DNA of 64,000 bases, from assembly GCA_964019335.1 (NCBI GenBank), contig OZ025694.1, forward strand, positions 476,324 through 540,323, in the 5' to 3' direction. The position numbers and the translations under genes were made by a program. Within the stretch, counting starts at the first letter, position 1. Every line of letters begins with the position of its first letter. Shown piece by piece: positions 58,211-64,000 of the stretch. The notes below the pieces were generated by a model. The model was not told where the DNA came from. It made no database searches and was given only the letters and a program-made list of their open reading frames with translations. This DNA comes from Diplonema japonicum (taxonomy: Eukaryota; Protista; Euglenozoa: Diplonemea).

Positions 58211-58532
58211 GAGACCCACTCCTTCCTCTCGGGTTTCATTTTTCATCGGTGGACTTGTTGTGTCACAACTTTTTATTTTTAAGACTTTTTTGAAATTTTT
58301 ATTTTTGAATTTTTATCATTTGGAGTTGCCTCTTCTTCTTCCCCTCTCCCTCCCATAAAGAAAAAGAGAAACCCATGCCTTCCTCCCAGGTTGGAACTTG
58401 ATTGTCTGTTTTGGAATATTTTTATTTTCTCTTAAGATTTATCGTGCCTTGTGTGTCTTTTGAAGAAAAAAAAAAAAAAAAAAACATTCTCAAGTCCCCC
58501 TTTTTATTTATTTTCTCAAGTCCCCCTAAAAA

Positions 58533-58571
58533 AACCAACGATTCTAAAGCTACAGTTTCTGTACTTTATTG
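58533..58571 (+). ncRNA. Spliced-leader (mini-exon) 39-mer, diplonemid type
   Basis: AACCAACGATTCTAAAGCTACAGTTTCTGTACTTTATTG is exactly 39 nt with the euglenozoan core CAGTTTCTGTACT-TATTG and the diplonemid AACCAACG start. Confidence 0.93.
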
Positions 58572-58712
58572 GTCGTCTGTGTTTTTGTTGGTGCCTGCTG
58601 CGTCCGCTCGGTGTCCGTTCGTCGTCGTCTGGGGGGGTTGTTTCGGCCCGGCCCGCCTGCCGTTTAGCAAAGGATCCCCTCCCCCCTCAACACAAAAAAA
58701 AAAAAAATAAAA

Positions 58713-61700
58713 ATGGACCCTAGACGAAACGTCGTCGGAGACCGCCGCCCGCAGGAGGAACGCCTACGAGAGACGCCGACCAAGCCGACCACCCGACCAG
58801 ACCGAAATCTGGCCGGGCAGTATGACCCCTCCCCTCCCCTTAGATCCCCTCTAGATGTCGTAAAAAATAATAAAAAACATAAAAAAATAGAACCACCCGC
58901 AGCCAGCGCGCCCGCTCCCGATTCCGCAGCCGCCACCGCCACCCGCCTGAAGACTGAGAGGGGGGAAAAAAAGAAAGAAGGAGGGTGGGTGCTCACGGGA
59001 GGGGACCACCCCCCGGGCTTAAGAACAGGCCCAGCTCCCACCCACCCAGAGACCTTGCTCTCGGGGGGGTGGGAGTCCATTTCGGGGAACAAAGGGAGGG
59101 AAACCCTCCAATTTGGTTTCAGGTGGGTGGGTGCCCGTGCCAAAGTGCGCCGCACCACCCCGATCCCAGAGGGGGCCAGGGGTTGGGTGGCGGAGGTGGC
59201 CACCGCAGCGGGGCTGGGGATCACCCCAGACCAGGTGCTCGTAAATCGATACGAGCCTGGGTGTGGAATCGCCCACCACACCGACGACGTGAGGTTGGGA
59301 CCAGTGGTCCTCATCCTCTCGTACGGCGCAGAGACCACGATGGTCCTGAAGAAGGGGTCCAGGGTATCGAAGTACCTGGTGCCTCCCTTCACCTGGGCCA
59401 TTCTGGAGGGTGAGGCCCGCTACGAATGGACCCACCACATCCCCGAAGGGTGTTCTTCGGGCTCCAGGGTGTCGATCACCCTGCGGACGGTTGGCTGCCC
59501 CGTGCCCCTCCCCTCCCCCTCTGTGTCCTCTGTGGAGGAAATAGAAAAAAAAAAAACTGTGTTTGTGGGGAGAAGGAAAGAGAGTGCGAAGGAGGTGTCC
59601 CCGAGAGAGGGAGGCGCCCCTTCCCCCCCTTCCTCCGCTTCTTCTTGTTCTTCTTTCTCTTGTTTATCTGTCCCCCCTCTTGTAAATTCCCCCCTTGTAA
59701 ACCCCCCCATTGTAGATTCCCCCCCCTTTGTTTCTTCCCAGGGGGAGGACAAGAAAAAAATAGGTAAGGGTGCACTCCCGAGAGAGGGTAGCGCCCCTTC
59801 CTCTGCTTCTTCTATCTCTGGATTATCTGTCTCCCCTCTTGTAAACTCCCCCCCTTCCTCCGCTTCTTCTTTTTCTTCTTTCTCTTGTTTATCTGTCCCC
59901 CCTCTTGTAAATTCCCCCCTTGTAAACCCCCCCCTTGTAGATCCCCCCCCCTTTGTTCCCTCCCAGGAGGAGGATAAGAAAAAAAAAAAAGGGAAGGGTG
60001 CACTCCCGAGAGAGGGTAGCGCCCCTTCCTCTGCTTCTTCTATTTATGGTTTATCTGTCCCCCCTCTTGTAAATCCCCCCCTTGCAAACCCCCCCCAAGT
60101 GGATTCCCCCCCCTTTGTTTCCTCCCAGAAGGAGGATAAGAAGAAAAAAGAGAAGGGTGCTCTCCCTAGAGAGGTTAGCGCCCCTTCGGCCCCCCCATTG
60201 TCACCCCCCCTTTACACCCGGATCCGAATGGGTCCGGGACTTTTTTTGAGGGTGGAAAATAAACAAAAAAACACACCCACACTCACTAACAGGAGGGGGG
60301 TCCTGGCCCCCGTTTCCACCACCCTCCAGGGGGTGGTGGGGGCGGTGGCCCAGGAGGAAAGATGGAAGCCGGAGCGCGCCCCGCAGGGGAGGAATGGAGG
60401 GGGAGTACCCTGGTTGGCCCCGGGACCCCGGAAGACGAGGCAGACGGTGACGAAGGGCCGGAGGAGGAGACACCGTAGCGAGGCCACCCTCCAAAGGCGC
60501 CGCGAGGAGAGGGCCCAGGCCAGGGAGAAGGCTAGGGAAATCGCTGACAGGGAGCGGAGGAGGCTGCACCGCCAGAGAAGGGTCGAGAAGAGGAGGGAAA
60601 GGGAAGCCTGCAAGAAGAAGGGGTGCGGTCCCGCCCCTCCAGCTGTTGCAGCCCGGCTCATCGGGATAGCGGAAGCGGAGGAGAGGGCTGCGATGGCCAG
60701 GAGGGCCATCAGGTCGAGGGCCGGGAAACACCTTGCGAGGAAGAGGTGGGTGGCCAGGAGACGTTGGGGGCCCTATACCAGGGTGGTCTATCGGAGCCCC
60801 GTGCCCCCCCTCCCCTTAGAAGCCTCCTCGCTCAAAGGCGGAGCAACGCTTTCCCAACCCCCACCCCCGCCTCCGCCCCCAGGCGCAGCCGGAGGCCCCC
60901 CCGCCACCAGTAGGAGCACGGCCGGGGCTTCCCGAAGGACCGACGGAGTGTGGGAGTGCCTGCTGTGTGAGAAGGGTAAGAAAGAGCACTCGTCGAAGGC
61001 GGGCTTGCAGTACCACCTGTCGAAGACCCACGCCGGAGAGCTCACGCCAGAGAACGCGAAGGCGATGGGTTTCGCGATCTGCGGAGGGTGCAGCGTGCTG
61101 TTCACGGCGGGGAACAAGGAGCGGTGCGTGAATTGCCGGCCCAAGCCCGAGAAGGAGCCCTCCCGCCTCGTCCGTGGGATATCGGGCTCGTCTGTCACCA
61201 GGGAGTCGATCCTGCACGAGGTGGGTGCCAAGGAGGAGGATGCTGGGGGCGGAGGGGATTGCTTGTTCCGCTCTCTGGCGGTGGTGCTGCTGGGGGAGAA
61301 GGAACGACACGGAGAGGTGAGGAGTCGGGTGGTCAACCACATAAGGGACAACAGGGGCAGGTTCGAGAGCTTTGTGGATCCGATCGGTTTTGAGGCCTAC
61401 ATCCACTACATGGCAAAGCAAGGGGAGTGGGGGGACCACCTTTGTCTGCAGGCGGCGGTGGAGGTCTGGCAAAAGACGGTCGTGGTCGTGACCGGGGGTG
61501 ACGCCCAGGTCTTGAAGCTCGGGGAGGCAAGGGAACCGGAGGATACGGTGGTGCTTGGCTTCACGGGATCCCACTACAGGCCTGTGTTGGTCTCGGAGGG
61601 CGGAAAGTCCACCCTGGTGGATTGGGCGGTGGAGGCGAGGCTAGCCCCCTCGGGGACCAGGCCCGCCATCCTGGACCTCGCCCACCTCCTGATGCCGGAG

Positions 61701-63420
61701 TCCTCCATCAGGCCCAACGGACACCACATGAAGGATGCCCCACGACTGGACAGCAAGGTCAGGAGTTTCCAGTGCCCGGTGAGGGGGTGCGAGAGGTCGT
61801 CCCACATGGGAGGCCCGGCGATCTTGGGGTGGGAACTGCTGAAGTCCCACTTGAACGACCACCTGCTGGACGAGGAGGTACTCCCGCAGGAGCTGAAGAA
61901 GTTTGGCCTCAAGACCTGCGTGTGTGGGTCGGTGGTGGGCGAACGGGAGGCGGCTCACGTCAGGTGCATCGCCAGGTACAGCGCTCCTGGGGGTCCCGTG
62001 GATGTGAAGGCGGCCCCTAGCCGGGACGCACTTCCTTCTCTGGAGGAGGTGGCCACCCGGAAAGTGGGCCTCATGAAGCACATCCCCGTCCCGCTCCAAG
62101 GGTTGTGGAGTCTAGCGCTGAAGACGGCACTGGTGAGGGTGAAGCAGGAGAACTCCTACCTGTCGTGGGTGCTGCTCCTGATGCTTCCGAAGGCTTGCCT
62201 GGGCAGACGCAGGGGTGGAAAGGCACGTCGGAAGTCCGGGGAGAGCAGCGCCAAGCAGAAGTTGGAGGCCTGGATCAGAGGGGAGTACCAGCAGGTGTGG
62301 AACGGAGTCCCCCTATCGGAGAAGAGAGTCTCGAAGGATCCAGACGACGAATCCAGGCTGAAGAGAGGGGAGACGCTGTGCAGGGATGGGCGCTTCTCCA
62401 GAGCCAACGCAGCGCTAACTGCGGGAGGGTTGGCGGAGGACTCCACCGAGACCTTCGAGAAGCTCCTGGGCCTCCACCCTGAGGCATCGGTTGACCCCTC
62501 GGGGCTAGAACTGAATCCGGCTGACTCCTTCGAGGACGTCACGGCCGTCGACGTTCTGAGCATGGTCCGGGACTTTGACAAGGGGAAAGCGGCTGGGCCG
62601 ACTGGGTTGAGCGCCCAACACCTGAAGGACGGGGTGGACGGCGTGGTGACGGAAGTAGGGGCCCTGGCGGCTCTCACCGAGGTGTGCAATATCATGGCCA
62701 GAGGTCAGACTCCGGCTGAGGTGGCACCGGTGCTACTAGGGGCGAGCTTGATTCCGCTGCGGAAACCGGACAGGGGAGTCCGTCCGATCGCCGTAGGAGA
62801 GAGCCTGAGACGACTTGTAGGGAAGGCAATCCTTGACAAGGAAGGGGCGGAAGTGGCCAAGTCCTACCTGAGGAAGGGGGGCCAGATCGGGGTGGCGGTC
62901 CCCGCGGGGATGGAGGCGGCTGTCCACGCGACAAGGCAGTACGTGGAGAAGGCGAAACAGGACGACGTATCCCGAGTGGCGATCAAGATAGACTACGCAA
63001 ACGCCTTCAACACAATCAGCAGGTACGAGATGCTAAAGGAGGCGTGCGCGAAGGTTCCCAAGGGGTACAAGTGGGCCGAATCTTGCTACAGACACCCATC
63101 CAAGCTGTTCCACGAGGGGACGGAGCTACTCTCGAGGGAGGGGGTCCAGCAGGGCGACCCGGTGGGTCCGTTGCTGTTCTCCCTCGCGCTGCAGCCAGTA
63201 CTGGAGAAGATAAGGGCGGATACAAGTCTGGACCTCCAGTTCTTCTACCTCGATGACGGGTTCCTGGCCGGAGAGAGGGGACAGGTGGAGAAGGCCTACC
63301 GCATCGTGGTAGAGGAGTCGGCGAAGCGAGGCCTGAAGGTGAAGCCGCAGAAGTGCGAGTTGATCTGGGTGTCTGGTGAGAAGCCGACCGACCCAGAAGA
63401 GTGGGGCTTCTCCGGTTTCC
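58713..63420 (+). CDS. Retroelement polyprotein: AlkB - S/P repeats - basic tract - Zn fingers - OTU - Zn fingers - RT
   Basis: Manual translation shows no stop from ATG 58713 into the terminal repeat (~1570 codons). AlkB ~59100-59490, OTU ~61240-61590, RT ~62580-63370. Confidence 0.9.
59598..60190 (+). repeat. In-frame coding tandem repeat (about 3 units) in the retroelement ORF
   Basis: PREG(S/G)APS...LSVPPLVN-PL-NPP-VD-PPFV-SQ-EDKKK repeated three times. Confidence 0.85.
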
Positions 63421-64000
63421 GCAAACCCGCAAACCCGCAAACCCGCAAACCCGCAAACCCGCAAACCCGCAAACCCGCAAACCCGCAAACCCGCAAACCC
63501 GCAAACCCGCAAACCCGCAAACCCGCAAACCCGCAAACCCGCAAACCCCCGCAAACCCCCGCAAACCCCCGCAAACCCCCGCAAACCCCCGCAAACCCCC
63601 GCAAACCCCCGCAAACCCCCGCAAACCCCCGCAAACCCCCGCAAACCCCCGCAAACCCCCGCAAACCCCCGCAAACCCCCGCAAACCCCGCAAACCCGCA
63701 AACCCGCAAACCCGCAAACCCGCAAACCCGCAAACCCGCAAACCCGCAAACCCGCAAACCCGCAAACCCGCAAACCCGCAAACCCGCAAACCCGCAAACC
63801 CGCAAACCCGCAAACCCGCAAACCCGCAAACCCGCAAACCCGCAAACCCGCAAACCCGCAAACCCGCAAACCCGCAAACCCGCAAACCCGCAAACCCGCA
63901 AACCCGCAAACCCGCAAACCCGCAAACCCGCAAACCCGCAAACCCGCAAACCCGCAAACCCGCAAACCGCAAACCCGCAAACCCGCAAACCCGCAAACCC
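63419..64000 (+). repeat. (CCCGCAAA)n satellite with an internal block of 10-mer variants
   Basis: 15 x GCAAACCC (63421-63540), 14 x GCAAACCCCC (63541-63680), one 9-mer, then 8-mers to the window end. Confidence 0.97.

Follow-up and report, generated by a model that had tools for sequence, protein, structure and literature searches.

The CRE, SLACS and CZAR elements of trypanosomatids have euglenozoan hosts, are inserted in spliced-leader (SL) RNA genes, and carry an N-terminal C2H2 zinc finger, a reverse transcriptase (RT) and a C-terminal CCHC motif with a restriction-like endonuclease (RLE). R2 elements (represented in the PDB by 9nl3 and 9dou) likewise combine N-terminal fingers with a C-terminal CCHC motif and RLE in a single ORF; they target the 28S rDNA and lack both AlkB and OTU domains. 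Co-occurrence of AlkB and OTU is known from flexivirus replicases, and the replicases of the Betaflexiviridae and Closteroviridae hold AlkB and a cysteine protease (OTU or papain-like) within one polymerase polyprotein, although these are RNA viruses with an RdRp rather than an RT. In RLE-bearing non-LTR elements, proteases of the deubiquitinase superfamily have been added N-terminal to the RT, namely Ulp1 in NeSL-1/Utopia (PMC4640811) and Josephin in Dualen (PMC9977147), and an N-terminal OTU deubiquitinase lies upstream of the non-LTR RT in the ORF2p of Symbiodinium necroappetens (preprint PMC13405545); AlkB has been reported in none of them. An AlkB-family domain is fixed in a Ty3/Gypsy retrotransposon of the orchid Phalaenopsis, an LTR element of a plant host in which a separate ALKBH5-like ORF, unaccompanied by OTU, has demonstrated m6A demethylase activity on ssRNA (PMC9289625). 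Finally, clustering at chromosome ends, head-to-tail arrays and eroded, capped copies characterize HeT-A/TART, Giardia GilM/GilT, Bombyx SART/TRAS and the rotifer Terminons.

The element described here lies towards the 3′ end of the window, the 64,000-nucleotide stretch of Diplonema japonicum DNA that was analysed. Each of its accessory domains has precedents (the orchid Gypsy AlkB, flexivirus AlkB with OTU, NeSL Ulp1, Dualen Josephin and the Symbiodinium OTU-ORF2p), with OTU here in place of the Ulp1 and Josephin proteases. Unlike CRE, SLACS and CZAR, it has the SL as its own 5′ end, a far larger ORF, AlkB, OTU, an acidic tail and a subtelomeric position. As a whole, the locus is probably best explained as part of a family (family A) of SL-mRNA-derived, chromosome-end RLE retrotransposons with an AlkB and an OTU that would serve the element.

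The truncated window copy and the full-length element

The window copy begins on the plus strand with a 39-nt copy of the SL exon (AACCAACGATTCTAAAGCTACAGTTTCTGTACTTTATTG, 58533–58571), which moves the start of the element upstream from the position 58713 given by the initial annotation. The same SL stands at the head of every copy, and the flanks upstream of it are mutually unrelated. A 5′UTR follows (58572–58712, plus strand; invariant among family A copies, with ~73% identity in family B), and then codons 1–1569 of a 2,990-codon ORF (58713–63419, plus strand), the translation of which differs from that of a full copy (L036:486-9455:-) by one amino acid. Frame +1, translated through to 64000, contains no stop codon, in agreement with the single uninterrupted frame first reported; it is missing from the ORF list because it runs past the window end, and the absence of a stop reflects the break in the element after 63419, beyond which the frame goes on to read a telomere-type repeat. 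This repeat, (CCGCAAAC)n, in which the 10-mer variant CCCCCGCAAA forms one block, fills 63420–64000 (plus strand) and caps the broken element, the cap amounting to 582 bp at the contig end, whereas intact copies read on into TCCAAGGAG... instead. The break falls inside the RT, just past FYLDDG, and the thumb, CCHC and RLE are missing. The window copy (58533–63419) is a terminal, 3′-broken copy of family A, and it is dead, having lost both the RT thumb and the RLE.

Full family A copies are 10,659 bp long with a single ORF of 2,990 aa, arranged from 5′ to 3′ as the 39-nt SL, the 5′UTR, the ORF, a 1.5-kb 3′UTR and poly(A). From its N terminus the protein comprises AlkB, Pro/Ser repeats, an Arg-rich region, C2H2 and C4 fingers, OTU and a CCHH finger, followed by RT, CCHC, a PD-(D/E)xK RLE and an acidic tail. 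The endonuclease expected at the outset is present in these full-length copies and was lost from the window copy with its 3′ truncation. Self-BLAST of the 10,659-bp unit revealed internal coding repeats only, with no terminal repeats or LTRs; matches to the 3′UTR stop at an A-run or poly(A), and the 5′ junctions are heterogeneous, some with partial SL duplications. The lack of LTRs points to an RLE-type non-LTR retrotransposon, and the CCHC and RLE of the full copies place it in the same RLE-bearing non-LTR group as CRE, SLACS and CZAR; on these sequence features, the element is LINE-like. The genome carries about 100 copies, belonging to at least three families (A, B and C), and transcription of the element is suggested by one public run that we infer to be RNA, in which depth over the element is low.

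Domains of the polyprotein and possible roles of AlkB and OTU

The AlkB-type Fe(II)/2OG dioxygenase domain was delimited to 58980–59522 (plus strand) by Pfam, PDB search, AF2 and Foldseek, with a Pfam core at 59094–59486. In a Pfam search with codons 1–1576, in which all window-copy matches exceed the gathering cut-offs, 2OG-FeII_Oxy_2 matches aa 128–258 (E = 5e-10, 40.3 bits; cut-off 31.2 bits). The catalytic residues N178-x-Y180, H189-x-D191 (59277–59285), H241 (59433) and R252...R258 all occupy columns that are invariant or at least 90% conserved in an alignment of 59 AlkB sequences, bearing out, together with the profile match, the complete catalytic set claimed by the initial annotation. 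A PDB sequence search with the domain retrieved ALKBH8 (3e-8), and the AF2 model (pLDDT 93.5) gave top Foldseek matches to the AlkB family only (ALKBH6, ALKBH8, ALKBH5, ALKBH3, AlkB and Ofd2), with viral polyproteins carrying AlkB also among the structural matches. By its motifs (HxD...H iron triad, RxxxxxR 2OG pair and NxY) and predicted jelly-roll fold, the domain is a member of the AlkB family. Its nearest structures, ALKBH8, ALKBH6 and Ofd2, have atypical or unknown substrates, and a protein or tRNA substrate is therefore possible; the Phalaenopsis domain, in contrast, is ALKBH5-like.

The OTU cysteine protease domain (61230–61607, plus strand; Pfam and PDB search) matches its profile at aa 846–931 (E = 7e-11, 43.1 bits; cut-off 23.3 bits), and the Cys and His that had been described as intact are indeed found, as Cys850 at 61260 and His954 at 61572. 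Both are conserved in Diplonema papillatum and both align with OTUD3 (5e-7 in the PDB sequence search, which also returned OTUD5 and OTUD1). The third catalytic residue of OTU proteases, which follows the His and orients it, is normally acidic or an amide (Asp/Asn). Two residues past the His, family A has Arg (SHYRP) and D. papillatum has Glu (GHYEK), which leaves it uncertain whether the OTU is fully active.

The RT region retained in the window (62010–63419, plus strand; Pfam, PDB search and homologue alignment) comprises an N-terminal extension and the fingers and palm to just past FYLDDG (63240–63257), consistent with the YLDD-type RT first noted. RVT_1 matches aa 1350–1552 (E = 5.5e-19), and the motifs AFN, QGDP.GPLLF and YLDD align with homologues. 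At E ≤ 0.01 the only PDB matches are three R2 chains, of which the best is remote (2e-8, 37 bits). Across the whole RT–RLE block, 270 homologues show 29–40% identity, and the closest named RT relatives include dinoflagellate RTs; AlkB and OTU were not found in the dinoflagellate and metagenome relatives, those scanned having RVT_1 alone. The CCHC (CPMC...HAMVC, aa 1831–1848) and, downstream of it, the putative RLE motifs (RHDRVRD, RKPADVY, IDVTV and K, aligned with homologues) are assigned in full copies only, by motif alignment rather than by profile.

Pattern scanning located the C2H2 (aa 749–773) and C4 (aa 790–808) fingers of the initial annotation at 60957–61136 (plus strand), a block with weak Pfam hints of zf-BED/DUF629 and a C4 finger alignable with D. 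papillatum, and a CCHH zinc-finger-like motif (aa 1021–1050) between OTU and RT at 61773–61862 (plus strand). Pro/Ser-rich tandem repeats (ALPREG...PLVN units; 59530–60230, plus strand; TRF period 162 at 59873–60187) form a variable linker that is poorly conserved between families A and B and differs in repeat number between sequencing runs. The Arg/Lys-rich segment RRRHRSEATLQRRREER... (60390–60782, plus strand; 24% K+R), the motif of which is retained in family B, may have a nucleic-acid-binding or coiled-coil role. Pfam matches in the window copy and in a full copy, motifs and the open frame together uphold the proposal that one polyprotein joins a non-LTR RT to AlkB, OTU and zinc fingers.

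In the mechanism that we favor, the element would use its RLE to integrate through target-primed reverse transcription. AlkB would be catalytically active as an Fe(II)/2OG oxidative demethylase with a nucleic-acid substrate, the RNA template of the element itself being the likeliest, and would clear it of base methylations that act as blocks or marks. OTU would be an active Cys-His protease with one of two tasks, deubiquitination of element proteins or cleavage of the polyprotein. Each domain would be of benefit to the element, since both remain in frame even though RT identity has fallen to 35–52%.

A more specific proposal, made in the initial annotation, is that the two domains form a counter-defence kit, AlkB erasing silencing marks such as m6A from element RNA and OTU stripping ubiquitin from element proteins to avert their degradation. 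This is plausible by analogy, if doubtful as the actual function. It has a direct precedent in the m6A-demethylating AlkB of the orchid Gypsy element (PMC9289625). AlkB also occurs in several RNA-virus families, joined by OTU in the flexivirus replicases; viral AlkB polyproteins are among the structural matches, and deubiquitinase-type proteases (Ulp1, Josephin and OTU) recur in non-LTR elements. However, the element AlkB is closest neither to ALKBH5 nor to FTO, and the sequence link to the viral domains is at the family level only, and nothing here points to a shared ancestry.

Viral OTU and papain-like proteases carry out both processing and deubiquitination, and the OTU here could be chiefly a processing protease, for example freeing an ORF1-like RNA-binding part (AlkB and the Arg-rich region) from ZnF-OTU-RT-RLE. 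The unusually long, multi-domain single ORF would suit such a role, as would xxGG|A motifs shortly upstream of ZnF-OTU in family A (SLKGG|A, aa 706–711) and likewise in D. papillatum (ELAGG|A and DLRGG|G); yet the family A ORF alone contains 20 [LIVR]xGG motifs, so the match may be due to chance, and we consider this role rather unlikely.

Spliced leader and chromosome-end location

The SL of this euglenozoan is of the kinetoplastid/diplonemid type. DNA copies of the element start at nt 1–3 of the mature SL and finish in poly(A), from which it follows that the template was a trans-spliced, polyadenylated mRNA; the SL on the element is the mark of retrotransposition from such an mRNA. CRE-style insertion inside the exon of an SL RNA gene was rejected, as what follows the complete SL is the element's own UTR, the SL RNA intron being absent there. 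The nine SL RNA genes are separate loci, and their intron after the SL differs from the element UTR. The original label of a CRE-type, SL-associated element is thus retained for its RLE-bearing group and withdrawn for insertion in SL RNA genes. The partial SL duplications at 5′ junctions are read as RT template jumps.

Euglenozoan SLs are hypermethylated at the cap, and reverse transcription is blocked by such base methyls. Classical substrates of AlkB include m3C and m1A, and FTO acts on m3U. In trypanosomatid cap4, nt 1 is m6,6A and nt 4 is m3U (bioRxiv 10.1101/2024.05.04.591051). An AlkB specific to the SL might strip RT-blocking cap methyls (or m1A and m3C) and let the RT copy through, a suggestion that we regard as unlikely. 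In its favor, every full copy keeps the SL down to nt 1–3, so the RT reads through nt 4; nt 2 is the last position reached in most of the unambiguous 5′ ends, just short of the m6,6A position of cap4; and AlkB is found in all SL-capped families of this genome. Nevertheless, nt 4 of the D. japonicum SL is C, not U, the unambiguous 5′ ends are few (about nine), many of the about 200 SL-bearing DNA copies in the genome may be trans-made retrocopies that needed no AlkB of their own, and the SL in a DNA copy is not obviously needed by the element.

Most of the ~118 AlkB matches lie within about 10–20 kb of contig ends (end positions confirmed for contigs C24, C47, C90 and C3, and taken from coordinates for the others), as do most OTU and RT matches; end-proximal matches are on the minus strand at contig starts and on the plus strand at high coordinates. 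The same telomere-type repeat as in the window is present at contig ends across the genome; it is non-canonical, TTAGGG not being found. Elements at contig ends occur in both orientations and in head-to-tail arrays, such as the four tandem units of C24 (98–100% identity to the query, reaching 100% in the three outermost). On C12 the terminal repeat adjoins a 5′-truncated copy that faces inward, and in one family B copy two terminal-repeat units lie 10 nt upstream of its SL. Family A lives at chromosome ends, where tip-adjacent copies have been eroded and healed with terminal repeat.

By analogy with Drosophila HeT-A/TART, the elements might serve chromosome-end maintenance, with AlkB and OTU functioning in telomere chromatin. 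The concentration of AlkB matches near contig ends, the arrays, the non-canonical repeat and the family B copy abutting terminal-repeat units would all fit, the last being the only junction here to suggest insertion into the terminal repeat. Unlike the telomere-associated retrotransposons, though, these elements sit at ends in both orientations, and the ends still carry short simple repeats, typical of telomerase; many copies are broken, and the near-identity of the C24 units is better accounted for by recombination than by successive additions at the tip. A role in end maintenance is improbable.

Conservation across families and species

Collection of genomic copies, with a test of domain co-occurrence and dN/dS, had been proposed in the initial annotation. 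AlkB, OTU and RT occur together in families A, B and C, all of which keep the AlkB–OTU–RT–RLE order in long open frames. Identity to family A is 71% (B) and 51–55% (C) in AlkB, 47% (B) and 52% (C) in RT, and 33% in OTU; the greater similarity of AlkB than of RT between A and B may reflect exchange of a 5′ module rather than constraint alone. Between these two families, dN/dS is 0.24–0.26 for AlkB and 0.43–0.52 for its flanks, at a dS (about 0.8–0.9) near saturation. The D. papillatum protein KAJ9442719.1 has the same domain order, being 35% identical across 1,263 aa and 42% identical within AlkB.

An assembly chimera or chance read-through that fused a host AlkB, a host OTU and a retroelement can be dismissed, for although the frame is open merely through running into the contig end, eight copies spanning essentially all of the 4.7-kb query (98–100% identity) lie on five contigs, a 6.4-kb contig from a public run covers AlkB to RT with one repeat unit skipped, a second organism's run contains near-identical pieces, families B and C as well as D. 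papillatum share the order, and host AlkB genes are just 27–35% identical to that of the element.

As to the suggested novelty, the architecture is already in GenBank, where the D. papillatum homologues are auto-annotated as "SLACS" (SLACS 132 kDa protein, an automatic name and the sole pointer to possible CRE-clade membership) or "tRNA methyltransferase", and we found no published description of it, nor any paper in the literature describing AlkB in a non-LTR element. The AlkB-OTU-RT layout, kept in several families and another genus, has apparently not yet been described in print.

For the SL-mRNA-derived, chromosome-end retrotransposon that we favor, there is also a small chance that AlkB evolved to suit existence as a trans-spliced mRNA, clearing base methyls of the SL cap (cap4-type m6,6A and m3U, or m3C) or other Watson–Crick-face methyls on the template so that full-length cDNA still bearing the SL can be made. 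In that case the element would be the first retroelement known to bring along a 'template-cleaning' enzyme, a parallel in nature to the AlkB pre-treatment used in tRNA sequencing.

Domain architecture of the window copy and the full-length element

The window carries, at 58533-63419 on the plus strand, a copy of the 10,659-bp retrotransposon referred to here as family A. Translation confirmed the uninterrupted frame proposed in the initial annotation: frame +1 is open from 58713 up to the window end, and it is absent from the ORF list, as had been noted, because it runs off that end. The AlkB, OTU and reverse transcriptase (RT) modules claimed for it were all recovered as Pfam domains above their gathering cut-offs (2OG-FeII_Oxy_2, residues 128-258; OTU, 846-931; RVT_1, 1350-1552; numbering of the family A ORF), and every quoted motif was found in its place. 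In an alignment of 59 sequences, the H189-x-D191...H241 iron triad, the R252/R258 2OG pair and N178-x-Y180 of the AlkB domain occupy invariant or nearly invariant columns. OTU Cys850 and His954 are encoded at 61260 and 61572, respectively, and the RT motif FYLDDG at 63240-63257, all on the plus strand; zinc fingers of C2H2, C4 and CCHH type lie at residues 749-773, 790-808 and 1021-1050. Rfam gave no matches to the window, and no 2A-like peptide was found in the element ORF.

The predicted AlkB model (pLDDT 93.5) matched structures of the AlkB family only (ALKBH6, ALKBH8, Ofd2, ALKBH5, NMAD-1, ALKBH3 and AlkB) and, among viral models, giant-virus AlkB-like proteins and the AlkB domains of Picornavirales and flexi/closterovirus polyproteins. 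These matches do not assign the domain to a subfamily, and hence do not assign a substrate either. The nearest matches of the OTU domain are OTUD3, OTUD5 and OTUD1; in family A its Cys-His pair is intact, but conservation does not extend to the usual third residue. Against the PDB, the RT matched only three R2 chains at E ≤ 0.01.

The window element is a broken copy. Beyond 63419, where intact copies read on into TCCAAGGAG..., the window holds 582 bp of (CCGCAAAC)n plus a block of the 10-mer variant CCCCCGCAAA through to its last base, and its right end coincides with the end of contig C47. The 4.7-kb window element has eight near-full-length matches in the genome at 98-100% identity (on C47, C79, C93 and C8, with four on C24), and shorter pieces of it are also numerous, showing recent multicopy activity. 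The four copies on C24 are arranged head to tail with a period of 10,659 bp, a unit without terminal direct or inverted repeats, and two of the four retain an unbroken 3,005-codon frame. The protein of a full copy, counted from the first Met, comprises 2,990 residues, 1,420 more than that of the window copy, with a single residue difference between the two. Only full copies therefore contain the RT thumb, which lies within these extra residues, a CCHC motif (residues 1831-1848), a PD-(D/E)xK-type restriction-like endonuclease (RLE) block alignable with its homologues, and an acidic tail of ~1,000 residues with three RKRVPS(N/H)E..SAQR repeats. At residues 2600-2990 of the full copy L036, the basic motif RKRVPS(N/H)E(A/T)xSAQR..KV occurs three times inside this long acidic C-terminal tail, a region with no Pfam matches.

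In the public sequencing run best matching the stretch, a 6,443-nt contig spans 58942-63419 and beyond, skipping one 162-bp repeat unit, and near-identical AlkB, OTU and RT pieces are present in a run labelled as another organism. One run has the spliced leader (SL) fused to many unrelated sequences, for which reason it was taken as RNA; its low-depth contigs on the element suggest that the element is transcribed.

Element ends and genomic location

All copies begin with AACCAACGATTCTAAAGCTACAGTTTCTGTACTTTATTG, or with the same sequence short of one or two bases at its start. The sequence is a spliced leader of the kinetoplastid/diplonemid type, with a UTR of 141 nt after it; the sequences 5' of the leader are unrelated from copy to copy. 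At the other end, the 1.5-kb 3'UTR closes with an A-run, followed in most copies by a long poly(A). True SL RNA genes, of which there are nine loci genome-wide, continue directly after the SL into an intron beginning GTACCCAATCTGATCC. Insertion of the element into SL genes is thus ruled out, as its SL leads into the element UTR and not into GTACCCAATCTGATCC. Together, the SL at the 5' end with unrelated flanks, the distinct SL RNA genes and the 3' poly(A) show that the element was copied into DNA from a mature mRNA that had been trans-spliced and polyadenylated. The earlier label of a CRE-type, SL-associated element consequently holds for its RLE-type architecture but not for an association with SL genes, the SL having been copied from the trans-spliced mRNA. 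Partial SL/UTR duplications at several 5' junctions (loci L007, L011, L022 and L024) are as expected from template jumps by the RT. Genomic DNA contains 215 copies of the SL exon, and only nine of them belong to SL RNA genes, which have the GTACCCAATCTGATCC intron; trans-spliced RNAs are thus commonly retroposed. One instance is on the minus strand of L024 at 2566.

Two further features are found upstream of family A copies. Many of them, the window copy included (~58400-58480), have immediately 5' a short unit that starts with an SL and closes with poly(A) (TCCCCATTTGTTAAGG...GAAG(A)n). Between the upstream poly(A) and the SL stand one to three copies of a ~25-nt unit, TTTCTCAAGTCCCCCTTTTTATTTA, located at 58480-58532 in the window and in matching flanks in L005, L006, L008, L009 and L028; this unit possibly represents a preferred target, or else filler added without a template.

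Nearly all element matches lie no more than about 10-20 kb from a contig end. Pieces that contain the 5' end mostly point outward, and 3'UTR pieces point both ways. On C12, a 5'-truncated, inward-pointing copy stands immediately behind the terminal repeat, an arrangement that fits a tip from which the outermost end of the element, whichever it is, was eroded and which the terminal repeat then healed. A single family B junction, with two repeat units 10 nt 5' of the SL, hints at insertion into or beside terminal repeats.

The terminal repeat itself, (CCGCAAAC)n with the 10-mer variant, occupies 63420-64000 of the window and contig ends across the genome (L011, L013, L026, L028 and L029), and (TTAGGG)5 does not occur in the genome. 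At every end examined, the strand with its 3' end at the tip is C/A-rich. The corresponding strand of canonical telomeres is G-rich; the polarity seen here is apparently the opposite. In short-read contigs, the same repeat unit in the same orientation was found on another broken copy (at 60529). A literature search for the motif returned chance primer matches only, and no paper with the motif. The elements mark chromosome ends bearing a non-canonical terminal repeat.

Long-term retention of AlkB and OTU

About 118 places in the D. japonicum genome match the AlkB domain. Those of family A are 96-100% identical to the query, those of families B and C, diverged relatives in the same genome, about 65-72% and 51-55% identical to family A, respectively, and host AlkB genes only 27-35%; recent capture of the domain from host genes was rejected on account of this low identity. 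OTU matches (33% identical to family A) and RT-RLE segments (47% in B and 52% in C) are found, spaced as expected, within the long open frames that encode AlkB; examples are the frames of 2,884, 2,967 and 1,951 residues on C9, C16 and C18, respectively. In the AlkB-bearing members of families B and C that were examined, the RT is of the RLE type, as in family A. Between A and B, dN/dS is 0.24-0.26 for AlkB and 0.43-0.52 for the flanking segments, at a high dS of about 0.8-0.9; among family A copies, the synonymous and non-synonymous counts are blurred by neutral decay after insertion and by a repeat linker in the alignment. AlkB and OTU have been retained long-term in the element lineage.

As AlkB is closer between A and B than the RT is, exchange of 5' modules may contribute to this pattern. 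The identity of the B and A modules (~71-73%), set against the values for OTU and RT, suggests such exchange between element lineages. The SL-UTR-AlkB module of family B lies on the minus strand of L033 (C24:39551-41677) and aligns with window 58533-60800.

An exhaustive HMMER search with the AlkB domain returned 1,699 relatives, D. papillatum elements among them; none of the 1.84 billion representatives searched exceeded 45% identity, and the top-scoring match was 39% identical. The few long AlkB matches, at 42% identity, are Diplonema papillatum proteins. One of these, KAJ9442719.1 (2,635 residues; 'Retrotransposable element SLACS 132 kDa protein, partial'), contains AlkB, OTU and RVT_1 domains arranged as in family A, with 35% identity over 1,263 residues that include the CCHC motif and RLE, and 42% in AlkB. 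Its siblings carry the name 'tRNA (carboxymethyluridine(34)-5-O)-methyltransferase', likely a wrong annotation derived from ALKBH8. Of two proteins annotated in this way, KAJ9446222.1 can be aligned to the element over AlkB and OTU and into the beginning of the RT, and KAJ9439924.1, compared in its AlkB domain only, is probably a fragment of a similar retroelement polyprotein. In the D. papillatum genome paper, SLACS-like RTs are listed apart from 'a dozen AlkB-type genes', which are interpreted there as host demethylases (PMC10161547). A database correction follows: the D. papillatum 'tRNA methyltransferase' and some of the 'AlkB-type genes' are likely parts of retroelements. Outside diplonemids, the nearest RT relatives (29-40% identity) are from dinoflagellates, a tardigrade, a moth and metagenomes, and have RVT_1 only, in a search covering proteins of up to 1,280 residues; the RT-RLE block found only generic RVT_1 clusters in the ESM Atlas.

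Precedents, proposed functions and implications

Non-LTR retrotransposons are usually pictured as minimal, with an RNA-binding protein, an endonuclease and an RT. In this lineage, the frame that encodes the RT has also kept an oxidative demethylase of the AlkB type and an OTU protease. Each ingredient has a precedent. AlkB is present in RNA-virus replicases and in orchid Ty3/Gypsy elements, where m6A demethylase activity is proven (PMC9289625), and the acquisition of AlkB by plant RNA viruses and by Gypsy elements of orchids parallels that seen here, a striking convergence. A Ulp1 protease is known from NeSL/Utopia (PMC4640811), Josephin from Dualen (PMC9977147) and an OTU fused to ORF2p from Symbiodinium (PMC13405545). 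In a search without most subscription journals and Repbase, we found no paper on AlkB in a non-LTR element, on the AlkB, OTU and RT-RLE combination or on SL-capped DNA copies of retrotransposons. The element is a real non-LTR retrotransposon, ordinary in kind and unusual in equipment.

We infer that integration would proceed by target-primed reverse transcription through the element's own RLE. AlkB would act as an oxidative demethylase on the element's own nucleic acid, and OTU would serve in deubiquitination, in proteolytic processing or in both; LxGG-type cleavage motifs were dropped as evidence of processing, being too frequent. More specifically, AlkB may remove RT-blocking base methyls from the hypermethylated SL cap, the trypanosomatid cap4 containing m6,6A and m3U (bioRxiv 10.1101/2024.05.04.591051). 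This proposal fits copies that pass SL nucleotide 4 and mostly end at nucleotide 2, as seen at few junctions and with a cap4 that is trypanosomatid and may not be that of this host. The SL-capped DNA copies provide a direct readout of how far an RT reaches into a hypermodified cap.

AlkB and OTU have persisted as the lineage diverged, both among the families of the D. japonicum genome, which number at least three, and between this genus and another. Gene control in euglenozoans is almost entirely post-transcriptional. The long retention of both domains points to a role in euglenozoan retrotransposition for methyl marks on RNA or DNA, and for ubiquitin-like modification or processing of the polyprotein.
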